The notes beneath the pieces were generated by a model that saw nothing but the letters and a program-made list of their open reading frames with translations, had not been told where the DNA came from and did no database searches. Positions 534 to 58,274 of a stretch of DNA of 64,000 nt are shown here, one piece after another. Each line of letters begins with the position of its first letter. The stretch's first letter is position 1. The stretch lies in sequence record NC_031010.1; one strand, given 5' to 3'. A program made the translations under genes and the position numbers.

Positions 534-1364
534 ATGAGAAAGTTACTCATTGGGGTATTGGCATTTTTAAGCTTTTCGGTCATGGCGGGCGAGAACGTCA
601 TCATCACCACAGGCCAGCAGGGTCTGACGTATAACTCCGTGTACGGGGTGAACTTAGCCGGTGCGTTGGCCGAGTTCGGTAACAAGTCGCAGGTCGTCCC
701 GTCCAAAGGGTCGCTGGATAACCTCGACAAAGTCGCGGCGAATGAAGCACAGGTTGGCTTCACGCAGGCAGATGCATTCCAGTTCTGGCGCGCTAAGCAC
801 CCGAACGAAGCGCAGAACGTAGACATCGTTGGCCAGTTAGCCCGCGAATGTGTCTGGGTAGCTGTGAAGCAGGATGGCAAAATTGGTAAAGCCGAAGAGC
901 TGACTAACGGTGCGAAGATTGCGGTCGGTGAGCCCGATAGCGGTTCGTACGCCAGCTGGCAGTATCTGCAGCAACTGGTAAAAGAATACGGTAAAGCTGA
1001 GACCTACGCCAAAGGCGGTATCCGTTCACTGGCCAAAGTGGCAACCGGTGAATACGATGCATTCCTGTGGGTGTCGGCTCCGGGCAAACCCAATAAGTTT
1101 CTGGATGCGGTCAACCAAGACGGCTCTGGCTTAAAACTGATTGATATGTCCACGTGGAACGTGAACGACAAACTGCCGAACGGCCAGTCTGTGTACACCA
1201 AAGAGTCTGCTAAGGTGAATAACAACATCTGGAATAGCTCGGTGGATGTTCCGTGCACCACGACGCTCGTTGTTGCCAACAACAACAGTAGCGAAGACCT
1301 GCTTGAAGCGGTGTCGACGATTCTGCTGAAGAATCAGTCCCGTGTCCTCGGCACTGCGAAATAG
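534..1364 (+). CDS. TAXI-family (TRAP-associated) periplasmic solute-binding protein
   Basis: Signal peptide MRKLLIGVLAFLSFSVMA; motifs TG..G.TY, SKGSLDNL, GFTQAD, IAVGEPDSGS typical of TAXI/type II periplasmic binding proteins; start moved to ATG 534. Confidence 0.8.
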   Translation: MRKLLIGVLAFLSFSVMAGENVIITTGQQGLTYNSVYGVNLAGALAEFGNKSQVVPSKGSLDNLDKVAANEAQVGFTQADAFQFWRAKHPNEAQNVDIVGQLARECVWVAVKQDGKIGKAEELTNGAKIAVGEPDSGSYASWQYLQQLVKEYGKAETYAKGGIRSLAKVATGEYDAFLWVSAPGKPNKFLDAVNQDGSGLKLIDMSTWNVNDKLPNGQSVYTKESAKVNNNIWNSSVDVPCTTTLVVANNNSSEDLLEAVSTILLKNQSRVLGTAK

Positions 1365-1960
1365 TTATCTGACAGTACGGCCGATGTGGGCTGATATCCC
1401 CATCGCGACGGAACGCGAGATTGCTGTTATCGCGAAGCGTAGACCGCAAGCAGACCCGTAAGCCTTGCGCAGCCGGGACACACAAAGCACTATTGCTTCG
1501 GCGGTAGGTGTCCCGTCCGTTCACAACTTATTCGATGAGCGAAACATGATTAGAGCCTTTGTGCAACATGCTCTTGGCCTTCTTCGGAATGTCATCAGCA
1601 ACATGCGCTTCTGGAGGCTCGATACTTATTGGTTATCAGGCTGTGGGACTGTACGCCATAAACCTGTTTCAGGACGCAAGTCCTCAACTCCGGCGCACGT
1701 CGTGAAGGACGAAGGTCAAGCACCAGCCCATTAAGCTGACTCGCTGACAAAAGCAACCTTCACCCACAATTTGAAAATAACTGATGGGATTGAGTTCCCA
1801 GATGCGAAAGAGTAGCTGTGTGCTACTGAGCACCTCCCCGGGACTGCTGAGCAGCGGGGGAATAGGGCCAACAAGAAAGTAATCGGAGGGGATGGCTCGA
1901 GAGACATTAGCCCGCGGGCACTGTTACTCACGACCTGCATCCCCTCCTGTTTAAAGATGA
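1365..1960 (+). ncRNA. candidate large structured ncRNA (~600 nt)
   Basis: No credible ORF; many helices, two cUUCGg loops (1497, 1583), GCAA tetraloop hairpin 1671-1684, 10-bp stem 1885-1894/1938-1947. Confidence 0.55.
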
Positions 1961-1975
1961 GTTAGTATATATGTT

Positions 1976-2051
1976 GCAGGCATAGCTCAGTTGGTAGAGC
2001 ATCTGATTTCCAATCAGAGGGTCGTCAGTTCGAACCTGACTGTCTGCTCCA
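1976..2051 (+). tRNA. tRNA-Gly(UCC)
   Basis: Cloverleaf: acceptor GCAGGCA/TGTCTGC, anticodon loop TTTCCAA, GTTCGAA T-loop, U73, encoded CCA. Confidence 0.95.
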
Positions 2052-2150
2052 GAAATGTAATTACAGGTTTACACTGTATTATGTACAAGACATGTGCGCT
2101 TAGCTAAACTGTTGCAAAAATAACAGGTTATCTCAGTACATATGTGCAAT

Positions 2151-2232
2151 GGTTGTGTCACGTTGGCGTGAGTTGGGTTTACGGCAGGCAAACGGACGTA
2201 AGCTCTTCGTGGTTCAATTCCACAGCACAGCC
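2151..2232 (+). ncRNA. tRNA-like RNA lacking a canonical anticodon arm
   Basis: 8-bp terminal stem GGTTGTGT/GCACAGCC, hairpin CACG-TTGG-CGTG, T-arm GTGG-TTCAATT-CCAC; no CCA. Confidence 0.55.
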
Positions 2233-2255
2233 CTCTTGTTATGTAAAAGAATTCT

Positions 2256-2340
2256 GGCGGGTTACTCAAGCGGCAACGAGAGCAGACTGTAAATCTGTTG
2301 ACTTCGGTCTTCGGTGGTTCGAGTCCACCACACGCCACCA
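2256..2340 (+). tRNA. tRNA-Tyr(GUA)
   Basis: Anticodon arm GCAGA-CTGTAAA-TCTGT, long variable arm, T-arm GGTGG-TTCGAGT-CCACC, CCA; one G-A mismatch in the acceptor stem. Confidence 0.93.
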
Positions 2341-2345
2341 GTTAT

Positions 2346-2420
2346 ACACCCATCGTCTAGCGGTTAGGACCGCTGCCTTTCGAGCAGTTAACCGGGGTTC
2401 AAATCCCCGTGGGTGTACCA
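2346..2420 (+). tRNA. tRNA-Glu(UUC) copy 1
   Basis: Acceptor ACACCCA/TGGGTGT, anticodon loop CTTTCGA, CCA. Confidence 0.92.
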
Positions 2421-2423
2421 AAC

Positions 2424-2499
2424 ATTCCCGTCATCTAGTTGGTAAGGATACGACACTTTCACTGTCGGTACACGAGTTCGAGTCTCGTCGGGAATACCA
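2424..2499 (+). tRNA. tRNA-Glu(UUC) copy 2
   Basis: Acceptor ATTCCCG/CGGGAAT, anticodon arm CGACA-CTTTCAC-TGTCG, CCA. Confidence 0.92.
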
Positions 2500-2622
2500 A
2501 ACACAAGACCGTAACCCTGCGGTGTGGTTAGTCGCCACTACTAGCGGTTACGCGATGCCCACTGCTGCGGGGTGTGTGATAGTGAGGTGGTTGACCCCAC
2601 CAAGCGAGCAGCGAGCAATTTT

Positions 2623-2698
2623 AGGGAAGTAGTTCAATTGGTAGAGCGTCGGTCTCCAAAACCGGTTGTTGGAGGTTCGAGTCCTCTCTTCCCTGCCA
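2623..2698 (+). tRNA. tRNA-Trp(CCA)
   Basis: Acceptor AGGGAAG/CTTCCCT, loop CTCCAAA, CCA. Confidence 0.95.
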
Positions 2699-2704
2699 AA
2701 CAGT

Positions 2705-2781
2705 AGGACTGTAGCTCAGACGGTTAGAGTGCCGCCCTGTCACGGCGGAGGTCGCGGGTTCGAAACCCGTCAGTCCTGCCA
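2705..2781 (+). tRNA. tRNA-Asp(GUC)
   Basis: Acceptor AGGACTG/CAGTCCT, arm CCGCC-CTGTCAC-GGCGG, CCA. Confidence 0.95.
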
Positions 2782-2786
2782 TATCT

Positions 2787-2876
2787 GGAGAATTGGATGA
2801 GTGGCTTAAGTCGCTCCCCTGCTAAGGGAGTGTATCCGAAAGGGTACCGTTGGTTCGAATCCAACATTCTCCGCCA
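2787..2876 (+). tRNA. tRNA-Ser(GCU)
   Basis: Arm CTCCC-CTGCTAA-GGGAG, long variable arm, G73, CCA. Confidence 0.95.
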
Positions 2877-2882
2877 TTACAA

Positions 2883-3036
2883 TGACACCCGCACCTCAAA
2901 ACCCTGGGTATTGCACCCAGAAAAAGAGTGCTGGCAGCCAATAAAGGCATCCGTTAGTAACCGTAGCCTTCGGGCGTAGATGGTGAAGACCGCCAAGTGC
3001 AGCCTTTAGAACTCCGTGGGATTCGGAGGGGTGTCA
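2883..3036 (+). ncRNA. 154-nt structured RNA with tRNA-like acceptor and T-arm top
   Basis: Terminal stem TGACACCC/GGGTGTCA, T-arm-like CTCCG-TGGGATT-CGGAG just before the 3' strand, nested internal helices. Confidence 0.55.
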
Positions 3037-3170
3037 CCTACACACGTTTAGAGAATCATCCTCTCTGGACGACCCCAATGGGCGCGCGGGGTGTTGATGT
3101 CTTAGGCCAGCAGCTTAAGACTAAGTCGTCTGACGTTAATTCGTCAGGGGGCGAGCGGCCACGCAATTTC

Positions 3171-3243
3171 TCAACGGTAAGCAAAACTGTGATGCACTGT
3201 GCTCGCGAACAGAATAGGTGGGTTAGAATCCCATAACCGTTGA
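3171..3243 (+). ncRNA. 73-nt tRNA-like RNA
   Basis: Stem TCAACGGT/ACCGTTGA, T-arm GTGGG-TTAGAAT-CCCAT; no D-arm or standard anticodon loop. Confidence 0.5.
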
Positions 3244-3252
3244 CCCTTTTAT

Positions 3253-3328
3253 TGGTGATTAGTTCAGTCGGTAGAACAGTGGACTGTTAATCCATATGTC
3301 GCAGGTTCGATTCCTGCATCACCAGCCA
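3253..3328 (+). tRNA. tRNA-Asn(GUU)
   Basis: Acceptor TGGTGAT/ATCACCA, loop CTGTTAA, G73, CCA. Confidence 0.95.
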
Positions 3329-3330
3329 CC

Positions 3331-3781
3331 TTTGCTCTGAGATAACTGTGAATGGCATTCCGGAAAAATTTCATTCAACCTAACACGTGCGGTCGTCTCA
3401 GCGCAAAACCCTTTCGGGATAGTGAACCCTGCAAACCGATGTGCTTGCATATCGGGTGTCCGCTATCCCGGACCTAATACAGACGGAAGCCGAATAGGTT
3501 TTTCTAACGCACTTACGCCCAGAGCCATTACGGGCTTCTGTCTGTACCAAATAGGGCATGGAGAGAGGTTGGCGATAATAGGCCGCCCTGTCTGTGTCCG
3601 TCCTTGTTTGTCGGGTAGGTAGTTCGCTTCCCCCCATGGATGCTGGCTGTGTCAGCCTGCCCGACAATCCACATTAGCGCGCTTGCTAATAGGTGTCTGA
3701 ACCTGACCCGTCGGATACTGCCCAGGTAGTTAGAAAGACTTCGACCACACCAGGGTACCCCCTCTCCGTTTTGGAGAGGGG
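3331..3781 (+). ncRNA. candidate structured ncRNA region (~450 nt)
   Basis: Consecutive long helices 3331-3407, 3415-3470, 3478-3546 (followed by CCA), 3608-3667, ending in a 9-bp hairpin 3759-3781. Confidence 0.5.
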
Positions 3782-3800
3782 AATACTCTATTTTATTTCG

Positions 3801-3820
3801 GATAGATATTATCTCTGTGA
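3801..3820 (+). promoter_or_regulatory. putative phage early promoter, RATAGATATTATY-N3-RTGA
   Basis: GATAGATATTATC-TCT-GTGA; the motif recurs 8 times upstream of genes. Confidence 0.7.
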
Positions 3821-3867
3821 ACGAAGATGTATTCACTTTAATCGACTGATCACAGAGGCCAGTAAAT

Positions 3868-4923
3868 ATGAAAAATCGTCACTTCAGTAATACCCGCAAC
3901 GGTGCACCTAAGATTGATGCACTGAGCAGCTTGCAAGGCTTAGGCTACACAGCACTCCAGGCAAAGAATATTCGCATGTGGCTTCCTCGCCAGTTCGGCA
4001 TGGGCGGTCTGGCATTACCTCGGGCTAACTACGAGTTCTGGAAAGCCTACGAGATTGTCAAGGACATGCAGCAGTACCGCAAGACCAATGCCCTCTCTTT
4101 ACAATTCGCGGGCTACGCAAAGGGCCGTACCGTATTCCAGTTCACGGATAACGAGTTCTTGGAGTACCGCAGTCCGACACTGCACTCAACGGTGTGGTCA
4201 CTCGAGTTTGTGCGTCACTTTGGCAACGGCCTGTGGCGCAGCAGCACGGATGCCTTTGAAGGTGGCCCACGCCAGCTTGAGTACATCGGGGATAACCTGC
4301 GTTTGAAGCGCGGTGAGTTGGCAACCCGTATTGTGGAGATGGAAGCCACACAGACGGTATACGACCTTAACGCAGACGGCGGCTATTTACCCCGTAACCT
4401 CGAACGCTATACCGAGAACGCGCGTGAGTCCATCGCTACGCTGTTCACCATGGCCGCGGTGTGTCACAGTAACCTGACGCTGAAAAGCGGCTGGAACCTC
4501 AACCCAGAGCGTCTGTGCTTCACCAAGTACCAGCACTGCGATTCACATCGCTTAGCGTTTGCCATCGGTAAACTCTGTGAGCTTTACCCACAGAAGGAAC
4601 AGTCGATTCGCAGTCACGTGATTCGGATTATGCAGACCCCGAACCACATTCAACTGATGAACGATGACTTTATCCCCGGGGTGTATCATGAAGGTGGAAA
4701 GGTACTCGCGGTTGAGCAACCGAGCTTCATTCTCAGTCCCGCCGGGGGTTTTATTCCGAGTGCCTTACAAGGAAGTCTGCCTGCCTTCTTTGTGAACCTG
4801 CCTTTCGCGTATGGGCCAAGTACCACCATCAACAAGCCGATGTTGTTTGTACCAAGAGAGTTGCGAGACGCCCACACCGAAGAAGAGTGGCTCCTCGGTG
4901 CTCGCCTGTTCTTTAAACTGTAA
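3868..4923 (+). CDS. hypothetical protein (351 aa)
   Basis: Long ORF between the promoter motif and a strong terminator; no family recognised. Confidence 0.85.
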   Translation: MKNRHFSNTRNGAPKIDALSSLQGLGYTALQAKNIRMWLPRQFGMGGLALPRANYEFWKAYEIVKDMQQYRKTNALSLQFAGYAKGRTVFQFTDNEFLEYRSPTLHSTVWSLEFVRHFGNGLWRSSTDAFEGGPRQLEYIGDNLRLKRGELATRIVEMEATQTVYDLNADGGYLPRNLERYTENARESIATLFTMAAVCHSNLTLKSGWNLNPERLCFTKYQHCDSHRLAFAIGKLCELYPQKEQSIRSHVIRIMQTPNHIQLMNDDFIPGVYHEGGKVLAVEQPSFILSPAGGFIPSALQGSLPAFFVNLPFAYGPSTTINKPMLFVPRELRDAHTEEEWLLGARLFFKL

Positions 4924-4929
4924 TACGAG

Positions 4930-4956
4930 AAAGAGCCTGCGGGCTCTTTTTTTTTT
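4930..4956 (+). terminator. intrinsic terminator
   Basis: AAGAGCC-TGCG-GGCTCTT plus long T-run. Confidence 0.85.
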
Positions 4957-7024: not shown

Positions 7025-7147
7025 TGTACGCTCCTCAGAAACGTTTTGCGGGCACCATAGCAAAAGGCGAAGGGTCAGTACCTACCCATACTAAAATTAC
7101 ATTACAGTGCTATTCTGTGCGGCATGACGCAAGGTAAAAAAGATTTA

Positions 7148-7167
7148 GATAGATATTATTACCATGA
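7148..7167 (+). promoter_or_regulatory. putative early promoter motif
   Basis: GATAGATATTATT-ACC-ATGA. Confidence 0.7.
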
Positions 7168-58239: not shown

Positions 58240-58254
58240 TTCGACCGAATCTGA

Positions 58255-58274
58255 GATAGATATCATTTAGGTGA
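58255..58274 (+). promoter_or_regulatory. putative early promoter motif (variant)
   Basis: GATAGATATCATT-TAG-GTGA. Confidence 0.6.

Follow-up and report, generated by a model that had tools for sequence, protein, structure and literature searches.

Tandem tRNA-sized, CC-tailed hairpins follow the last tRNA gene of Erwinia phage vB_EamM_Kwan and of related jumbo phages

Results

Genes and features at the locus

The window analyzed in this study is the first 64 kb of the genome of Erwinia phage vB_EamM_Kwan (KX397369, genus Wellingtonvirus, 246 kb). All coordinates are those of the record. ARAGORN identified eight tRNA genes in Kwan, located on the + strand between 1976 and 3328. A tRNA-Asn(GUU) gene closes the array in every relative with an intact array, and tRNAs of the queuosine family (Tyr, Asp, Asn, His) are abundant in the arrays of Kwan and its relatives. 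Two nucleotides 3' of tRNA-Asn a chain of hairpins begins, here named H1 to H7 and followed by a terminator-like hairpin (Table 1). The Kwan record has no annotation from tRNA-Asn to gp14 (CDS 3868-4923). Immediately 3' of gp14 a classic intrinsic terminator with an 11-bp stem and a long T run is present at 4927-4952.

A further tRNA-sized hairpin of 73 nt and 21 bp (3171-3243) is located just 5' of tRNA-Asn and bears a CCC tail. This stretch is missing in the metagenome contig L017, where 3162-3248 remained unmatched, and a contig of the RNA library X3 skips 3169-3251, i.e. the same hairpin. Judged from these sequences, loss of the stretch appears to be a cassette-like indel at unit boundaries. 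In phage SNUABM_11 approximately 115 nt of tRNA debris (L002:2354-2475) lie between tRNA-Asn and H1. No tRNA was called here. Within the debris a T-arm-like GGTTCGAATCC and a D-arm-containing 5' half are found, and ..GCCACCA still precedes H1.

Table 1. Features between the last tRNA gene and gp14 of Kwan
Feature	Position	Strand	Description
tRNA-Asn(GUU)	3253-3328	+	Final tRNA of the array, CCA encoded; called by ARAGORN, 73.5 bits with the Rfam tRNA model
H1 (family module M1)	3331-3411	+	77-nt hairpin at 3331-3407, 26 bp, stem TTTGC..CTGAGA/TCTCAG..GCAAA; tail ACCC
H2	3413-3475	+	60-nt hairpin at 3413-3472, closing stem of 12 bp (CGGGATAG/CTATCCCG), inner 8-bp hairpin with CUUG loop; tail CCU
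H3 (family module M3)	3478-3549	+	Stem at 3478-3546 (13 bp), inner helix of 6 bp, variable tip; CCA at 3547-3549 directly after it
H4	3554-3605	+	46-nt hairpin at 3554-3599; tail GUCCUU
H5	3608-3671	+	60-nt hairpin at 3608-3667, closing stem of 12 bp, followed by UCCA
H6, H7 and CCAGGG segment	3673-3756	+	H6 AUUAGC/GCUAAU at 3673-3690; H7 at 3692-3719; CCAGGG conserved
Terminator-like hairpin	3759-3798	+	CCCCUCUCC/GGAGAGGGG at 3759-3781, 9 bp; U-rich at 3788-3798
Early promoter motif of gp14, phiKZ-type	3784-3825	+	Bounds the element and lies outside the RNA; from repeats and consensus comparison

Structure, strand and coding potential

The initial annotation had proposed a chain of long helices at 3331-3790, and every helix that it listed was found at its place. 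H4, H6 and H7 are additions to that list. The + strand folded with a minimum free energy of -184.2 kcal/mol versus -144.7 ± 6.7 kcal/mol for 100 dinucleotide shuffles (z = -5.9), and none of the shuffles was as good. The - strand of the chain beat its shuffles as well (z = -3.9). Among the 150 predicted pairs 24 are G.U pairs, which can be formed by + strand RNA only, and in span-limited folds the tRNA strand was favoured over the other strand by 17 kcal/mol. None of the modules was found repeated elsewhere in the genome; the promoter motif alone repeats.

Between 3326 and 3870 no Rfam family matched at E ≤ 10, with GOLLD, ROOL and the ribozymes included in the search. Over 12 kb only the tRNAs were matched at E ≤ 1 and the chain was not, and the loci of seven relatives likewise yielded only tRNAs, none of them 3' of the last tRNA. 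Additionally, ARAGORN called no tRNA beyond 3328, i.e. no cloverleaf was recognized in the chain. Inspected by eye, the bases of the three stems H3, H5 and M1 lack a G3.U70 pair. Aminoacylation of H3, which had been suggested as a check, is unsupported. A local likeness to 5S rRNA (GCCUGGCGG, ACCUGACCC) was dropped, there being no match to the 5S model. A string resembling a type I-F CRISPR repeat at approximately 3714-3737, recognized by eye, was rejected as well: it is not conserved in SNUABM_11 and the repeat hairpin is impossible.

The ORFs within the stretch encode 41 to 102 aa. Five of them were compared with Pfam and PHROG and gave no match. According to the alignment these short ORFs are not kept among the relatives, being interrupted by module indels, and the ORF at 3352 stops after 13 codons in SNUABM_11. 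A pseudogene of the protein gene that occupies this slot in other relatives (see below) was also considered and rejected, as tblastn searches of 1301-3900 with Caitlin gp13, ChrisDB gp19, SPN3US_0004/0002 and Asesino gp20/21 gave no match.

The CC tail

The chains of 11 phages were folded with a span limit of 85 nt. All eleven resolve into hairpins of 54 to 79 nt with 17 to 28 bp and closing stems of 12 to 18 bp. A CC was present at a distance of at most 5 nt from the closing stem in 38 of 49 hairpins, compared to a background of 27.5%, and mostly followed as stem-CC or stem-N-CC. The remaining 11 hairpins lacked the tail. Often the tails were CCU or CCC instead of CCA.

The units of Kwan range from 46 to 77 nt and are thus of tRNA size, with 3' tails of the NCCA type: H1 (..GCAAA-A-CCC), H2 (..CCCGGA-CCU), H3 (..GUCUGU-A-CCA), H4 (GU-CCU) and H5 (..GACAA-U-CCA). 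The linkers (CCAAAUA, CCUAAU and similar) resemble those from tRNA to tRNA in the array of Kwan. Within 1365-3800 the tail is carried by the tRNAs and H1 to H5, yet among the remaining large hairpins of this RNA island by only 5 of 15.

The unit at 3478-3549 had initially been singled out as CCA-ended. Its CCA is present in Kwan, but the exact CCA is not conserved: the tail after H3 reads ACCA in Kwan, UCCA in SNUABM_11, UCCC in UViG L006, AUACC in SPN3US and GACC in SNUABM_29. The conserved feature is rather an (N)CC tail after nearly every hairpin. Since CC tails follow most of the hairpins, the rule is a general one and the CCA-ended unit exemplifies it. The tandem array of tRNA-sized, CC(A)-tailed hairpins is a new observation.

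Conservation within the genus Wellingtonvirus

The within-genus relatives were Wellington (97% identical), the Kwan-like contig L015, the UViG and metagenome contigs L006/L016, L004, L007 and L017, and phage pEa_SNUABM_11. The modules H1, H3 and H5-H6, the 3' part and the terminator hairpin shared 81-100% identity with these relatives, compared to 66-78% for the CDS of gp14, and are therefore as conserved as the tRNAs. In agreement with the initial proposal, which depended on helices being shared by close relatives, H1, H3, H5, H6, H7 and the terminator hairpin are kept, and with compensatory changes.

Between Kwan and SNUABM_11 base pairs changed on both sides were found in H1 (three), the terminator hairpin (one) and H5, where one G-C pair is replaced by A-U and another by U-A next to three one-sided changes. 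Several transitions between G-C, G.U and A-U were observed as well, and the pairing of H7 is kept via one-sided changes. The 41-nt interior of H1 is invariant across Wellingtonvirus lineages whose stems have diverged.

H2 was present only in Kwan, L015 and Wellington and is cleanly absent in the UViGs L006 and L017 and in SNUABM_11. H4 was restricted to Kwan and Wellington. Its slot is empty in SNUABM_11, and in the UViGs L006 and L017 it is occupied by a different hairpin with the GCCUGGCGG motif of module M4. From the sequences compared, whole modules appear to behave as cassettes that are lost or swapped between relatives.

A search of IMG/VR and the JGI metagenomes for exact matches to the H1 core returned Wellingtonvirus-like contigs only. 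The exact-motif search with the H3 loop gave one extra match (L014), a chance match within a coding region, and a locus search based on gp14 yielded no further homologues.

Conservation across genera

Homologues of gp14 adjoin the tRNA cluster in approximately 50 SPN3US-like phages of Erwinia, Salmonella, Escherichia and Proteus. The tRNA content varies widely among the relatives. Nine further loci were included, namely those of SPN3US, SPAsTU, SNUABM_29, Caitlin, ChrisDB, Huxley, SNUABM_10, SNUABM_4 and Asesino, and a homologous chain was found after the last tRNA at these loci. Each of the cross-genus chains tested beat its shuffles, with z between -3.2 and -6.9.

H1, H3, H6 and the terminator hairpin recur after the last tRNA in phages of the genera Seoulvirus, Machinavirus and Erskinevirus. 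In every genus examined M1, the family module that corresponds to H1, is located 0-2 nt from the CCA of the last tRNA. The exception is SNUABM_11, in which the tRNA debris lies in between and H1 starts 5 nt from the CCA of the debris. Across 11 phages 86% of the M1 cells were paired versus 40-57% with slid partners. Nine of the 15 pairs of M1 changed on both sides, and none of 500 shuffles matched the observed covariation score.

Homologues of H3 were found in SNUABM_11, UViG L006, SPN3US and SNUABM_29. Here, the base of the stem is ACAGRC/GUCUGU throughout, and covariation is seen in the inner stem. Of the 21 pairs of H3 five changed on both sides. The loop motifs of H3 are common to Wellingtonvirus and Seoulvirus. 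The slot of H2 holds another hairpin (M2) in the other genera.

By alignment, H6, H7, the CCAGGG segment and the terminator hairpin were found family-wide. The stem of H6 reads AUCAAC/GUUGAU in Caitlin and ChrisDB, two pairs having changed on both sides, and the terminator hairpin is conserved in 10 phages with both-sided changes in five of seven pairs. A family-wide consensus fold of the 3' part failed except at the terminator hairpin, as sequences this divergent could be aligned only poorly. Taken together with the two both-sided changes in H5, the covariation that had been named as a check was found in H1/M1, H3, H5 and the terminator hairpin, and a structured RNA after the last tRNA is supported by helices and compensatory changes kept in the relatives.

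The phages of Seoulvirus and Machinavirus carry an inserted protein gene (SPN3US_0004, Caitlin gp13) between the M-modules and H6. Its 5' leader and its 3' UTR are made up of these hairpins, the H6-H7 part being the 3' UTR. The gene family was absent from Wellington, SNUABM_11 and Asesino in searches whose positive controls worked. Consistently, it was observed in Seoulvirus and Machinavirus and not in Wellingtonvirus or Erskinevirus. The product of the gene (L010:2936-3757, L011:3257-3769, L012:3253-3762 and homologues) varies in length from 170 to 344 aa and has a conserved N-terminus (MFTV..R) and C-terminus (..GD.VYV.N..GKT.D.LR).

Some annotated ORFs overlap the conserved chain. These are Asesino gp20 and gp21 (L013:3619-4023), which have no homologue among the relatives, and the 5' end of Huxley gp20 (L019:2706-2955), whose annotated start is situated about 250 nt 5' of that of the SNUABM_10 homologue. 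Probably gp20 and gp21 of Asesino and the 5' end of Huxley gp20 are mis-annotations over non-coding RNA, and the conserved chain flags them as such in the published genomes.

3' boundary, promoter motif and RNA-library contigs

The U-rich tract of Kwan begins 6-7 nt past the 9-bp G+C-rich stem of the terminator-like hairpin, for which reason a simple terminator scan misses 3759-3798. In several relatives the U run follows the stem immediately. The genomes of Wellington and SNUABM_11 each have about 8-10 copies of the adjacent promoter motif TTTCGGATAGATATTATCTCTGTGAA, all of them on the + strand as recorded, and the motif recurs in the window at 7143-7158 and 58250-58265. It is also conserved upstream of genes in SPN3US-like phages, e.g. 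behind a hairpin at 109.9 kb of SPN3US. An early-promoter consensus has been reported for the phiKZ-like phages OBP and N1M2, and phiKZ has a motif of its own, TATATTAC (PMC7058600). In our own comparison with Table 2 of that study, TTTCGGATAGATATTATCTCTGTGAA fits the OBP/N1M2 consensus. Based on the terminator-like end and the promoter motif, gp14 would form a transcription unit of its own, probably an early one. Transcription of the phiKZ tRNAs requires the non-virion RNA polymerase (PMC12571901), and by analogy the trailer 3' of the Kwan tRNAs may be transcribed at the middle or late stage.

The expression data are contigs of close relatives from public metatranscriptome libraries, from which strand, ends and level are not readable, and such libraries may contain DNA. 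The initial annotation had made its proposal dependent on a transcript beyond tRNA-Asn, and contigs of the RNA libraries do cover 3244-3803. In library X2 this is a single contig that reaches from tRNA-Asn through the terminator hairpin, the next one covering 3831-4908. In X5 a contig at 3191-3745 is followed by one at 3829-4112, and in X3 a contig covers 3033-3745 while 3772-4187 is uncovered. The gap is crossed by one contig (3568-3944) in X1, which is probably DNA. In the RNA libraries the contigs of gp14 start at 3829-3831. The contigs thus break where the terminator and the promoter are predicted, which favours RNA as the origin of the reads. The contig depth in X2 was about 9 for the chain and about 13 for gp14. 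As the chain is no deeper than gp14, there is no sign of strong accumulation; small structured RNAs are under-sampled by standard libraries.

Discussion

Proposed origin and alternatives

The explanation that we prefer, with roughly an even chance of being correct, is a co-transcribed trailer that is cut by host tRNA-processing enzymes into small hairpin RNAs similar to T4 rnaC and rnaD. The stretch 3331-3798 would then be the non-coding trailer of the tRNA operon, transcribed from the + strand together with the tRNAs and ending at the conserved hairpin-plus-U terminator. It would form tandem tRNA-sized hairpins rather than one large fold, and would repeat the unit syntax of the upstream tRNA genes: a stem of at least 12 bp, (N)CC(A/U/C), a short A/U-rich linker and the next unit. 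Host RNase P would cut at the 5' base of each unit and host exonucleases would trim the 3' tails. The expected product is a set of several stable hairpin RNAs of approximately 60-80 nt, as with T4 rnaD and rnaC, and the mature RNAs would probably use the invariant interiors of H1 and H3 to bind a partner.

A succession of stems of at least 12 bp, (N)CC and linkers is to be expected if the enzymes that mature tandem tRNAs release each unit. For bacterial RNase P a hairpin that ends in a 3' RCCA tail suffices as minimal substrate, which makes release by this enzyme the most likely mechanism. Several observations count against the preferred explanation. The tails are often CCU or CCC and are missing from 11 of the 49 hairpins, the +1/-1 residues of the units differ from the G+1/U-1 that is typical of good RNase P sites, the contig depth gives no sign of strong accumulation, and a CCA-adding enzyme was not found in the Wellington record.

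In Seoulvirus and Machinavirus the hairpins are the leader and 3' UTR of a gene and could therefore act purely in cis. They would then be punctuation, i.e. processing or stability elements (RNase III/RNase E sites, exonuclease barriers) that separate the tRNAs from the downstream mRNA and protect transcript ends, with no function once excised, and those of Kwan would be the persisting leader and 3' UTR of a gene absent from its lineage. We regard this as possible, at a distinctly lower probability than the processed trailer. It agrees with the position of the protein gene between the M-modules and H6 and its absence in Wellington, SNUABM_11 and Asesino, with the full replacement of hairpin sequence that is tolerated in slots 2 and 4, and with the size of the units, whose irregular helices of 20-27 bp would suit phage RNase III sites. 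However, plain stability hairpins should not retain invariant interiors, and H1 has kept 41 invariant nucleotides despite diverged stems, just as the H3 loop motifs are common to two genera. Furthermore, the chain is under purifying selection in two genera without the gene, and cleavage by RNase III or RNase E leaves the CC-tail rule unexplained. The tRNA size, the CC(A) tails and the tRNA-like linkers would also be found in decayed tRNA genes, functionless fossils of the array that kept the CCA and the linker and lost the cloverleaf. The debris of SNUABM_11 between tRNA-Asn and H1 and the widely differing tRNA content of the relatives point in the same direction. We nevertheless consider such fossils very unlikely: no similarity to the tRNA model was detected at E ≤ 10, the closing stems have 12-18 bp and not 7 bp, and compensatory changes together with a conservation across genera at the level of tRNAs are unexpected under neutral decay. 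Even less credit can be given to an element acting at the DNA level (a replication origin, a packaging site or protein-binding cruciforms) or to unannotated small protein genes. The many inverted repeats and the z score of the - strand would fit the former and the presence of ORFs the latter, but the 24 G.U pairs, the advantage of 17 kcal/mol for the tRNA strand and one-sided changes that preserve pairs through G.U argue for RNA, while the ORFs have no family matches and are broken by indels or stops in the relatives, and no remnant of the relatives' neighbouring genes was found.

Beyond the processed trailer, a more far-reaching and rather unlikely reading is that the hairpins imitate the acceptor end of tRNAs. 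Here, CCA-tailed minihelices released by RNase P would serve as decoys or sponges for host factors that act on tRNA 3' ends. The targets may be, for example, 3' exonucleases or those defence toxins by which the CCA end is extended or pyrophosphorylated. Such a role is compatible with the CC-tail rule, the number of tandem copies, the turnover of some cassettes and the linkage to tRNAs. If it were true, the decoys would shield the tRNAs of both phage and host in the course of infection and would constitute an RNA-based counter-defence inside a tRNA array. Should the hairpins prove to be tRNA-end mimics, a role in the conflict between phage and host over tRNAs would make them of greater interest.

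Comparison with known systems

In the literature on SPN3US transcriptomes and on ncRNAs of jumbo phages no description of the chain was found. Small structured RNAs are present in the related nucleus-forming jumbo phage phiKZ, where UTR-derived ncRNAs with two stem-loops are processed from transcript ends (PMC8545117). These differ from the Kwan chain in being single UTR fragments of 100-180 nt without a link to tRNAs, and no homology is claimed.

Large ornate phage RNAs, GOLLD and ROOL, are often located near tRNA islands (bioRxiv 10.1101/2024.12.08.627333). With these the chain shares its origin in a phage, a structured length of several hundred nt and the position adjoining tRNA genes. In contrast, it has no Rfam match and consists of independent hairpins. 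Whole modules may be missing or exchanged, and the chain can accommodate an inserted gene, which does not fit one pseudoknotted fold.

HDV-like ribozymes have a nested double-pseudoknot topology, whereas H1 is closed by a long helix that joins its own 5' and 3' ends and thus appears to be built differently. The HDV-like theta ribozymes adjoin viral tRNAs and have been linked to tRNA processing (PMC10879173; bioRxiv 10.1101/2023.06.13.544163). The Kwan chain is also a structured RNA beside viral tRNAs, but it matches no Rfam ribozyme family.

RNase P is known to cleave hairpin models of the acceptor/T-stem as well as pre-4.5S RNA, and the GGU of its P15 pairs with the 3' RCC (PMC11143913). The Kwan units resemble these substrates in having helices of at least 12 bp (12, 13 and 12 bp in the stems of H2, H3 and H5) and a 3' (R)CC(A). 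They differ in that their tails are often CCU or CCC, the +1/-1 residues are atypical and a T-loop is lacking.

The closest likeness in arrangement is to phage T4. There, rnaC and rnaD are still listed as "RNAs of yet unknown functions" (PMC9697503). In T4 the last tRNA gene, tRNA-Arg, is followed after 1 nt by rnaD (species 2) and after 6 more nt by rnaC (species 1). In both phages the RNAs are thus located directly 3' of the last tRNA and on the same strand, with spacers of 1-6 nt in T4 and of 2 nt before H1 in Kwan. The T4 RNAs are structured as well (rnaC folds with z = -4.6) and have tRNA-like ends, the annotation of rnaD ending in ACC with A as the next base and hence an encoded ACCA. 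Additionally, rnaC bears a T-arm-like GGUUCGAAUCC. Small stable RNAs after the T4 tRNA cluster have been known since the 1970s. There is no sequence homology between the two systems, as blastn-short of rnaC and rnaD against Kwan gave only chance 7-8-mers. The two RNAs of T4 measure 119 and 139 nt and one of them is partly tRNA-shaped, whereas Kwan has at least five simple tandem hairpins of 46-77 nt that are gained, lost or swapped as cassettes among relatives.

The chain is an uncatalogued RNA family of the rnaC/rnaD kind with a different architecture, composed of tandem simple hairpins with cassette turnover. An arrangement similar to that of rnaC and rnaD has evolved or persisted in nucleus-forming jumbo phages unrelated to T4, comprising the genera Wellingtonvirus, Seoulvirus, Machinavirus and Erskinevirus. 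The new family comes with covariation support and with natural deletion and swap variants that are usable for genetics. Compared to T4 its design is simpler, and tandem hairpins with tRNA-like tails provide a concrete, testable rule for making such RNAs.
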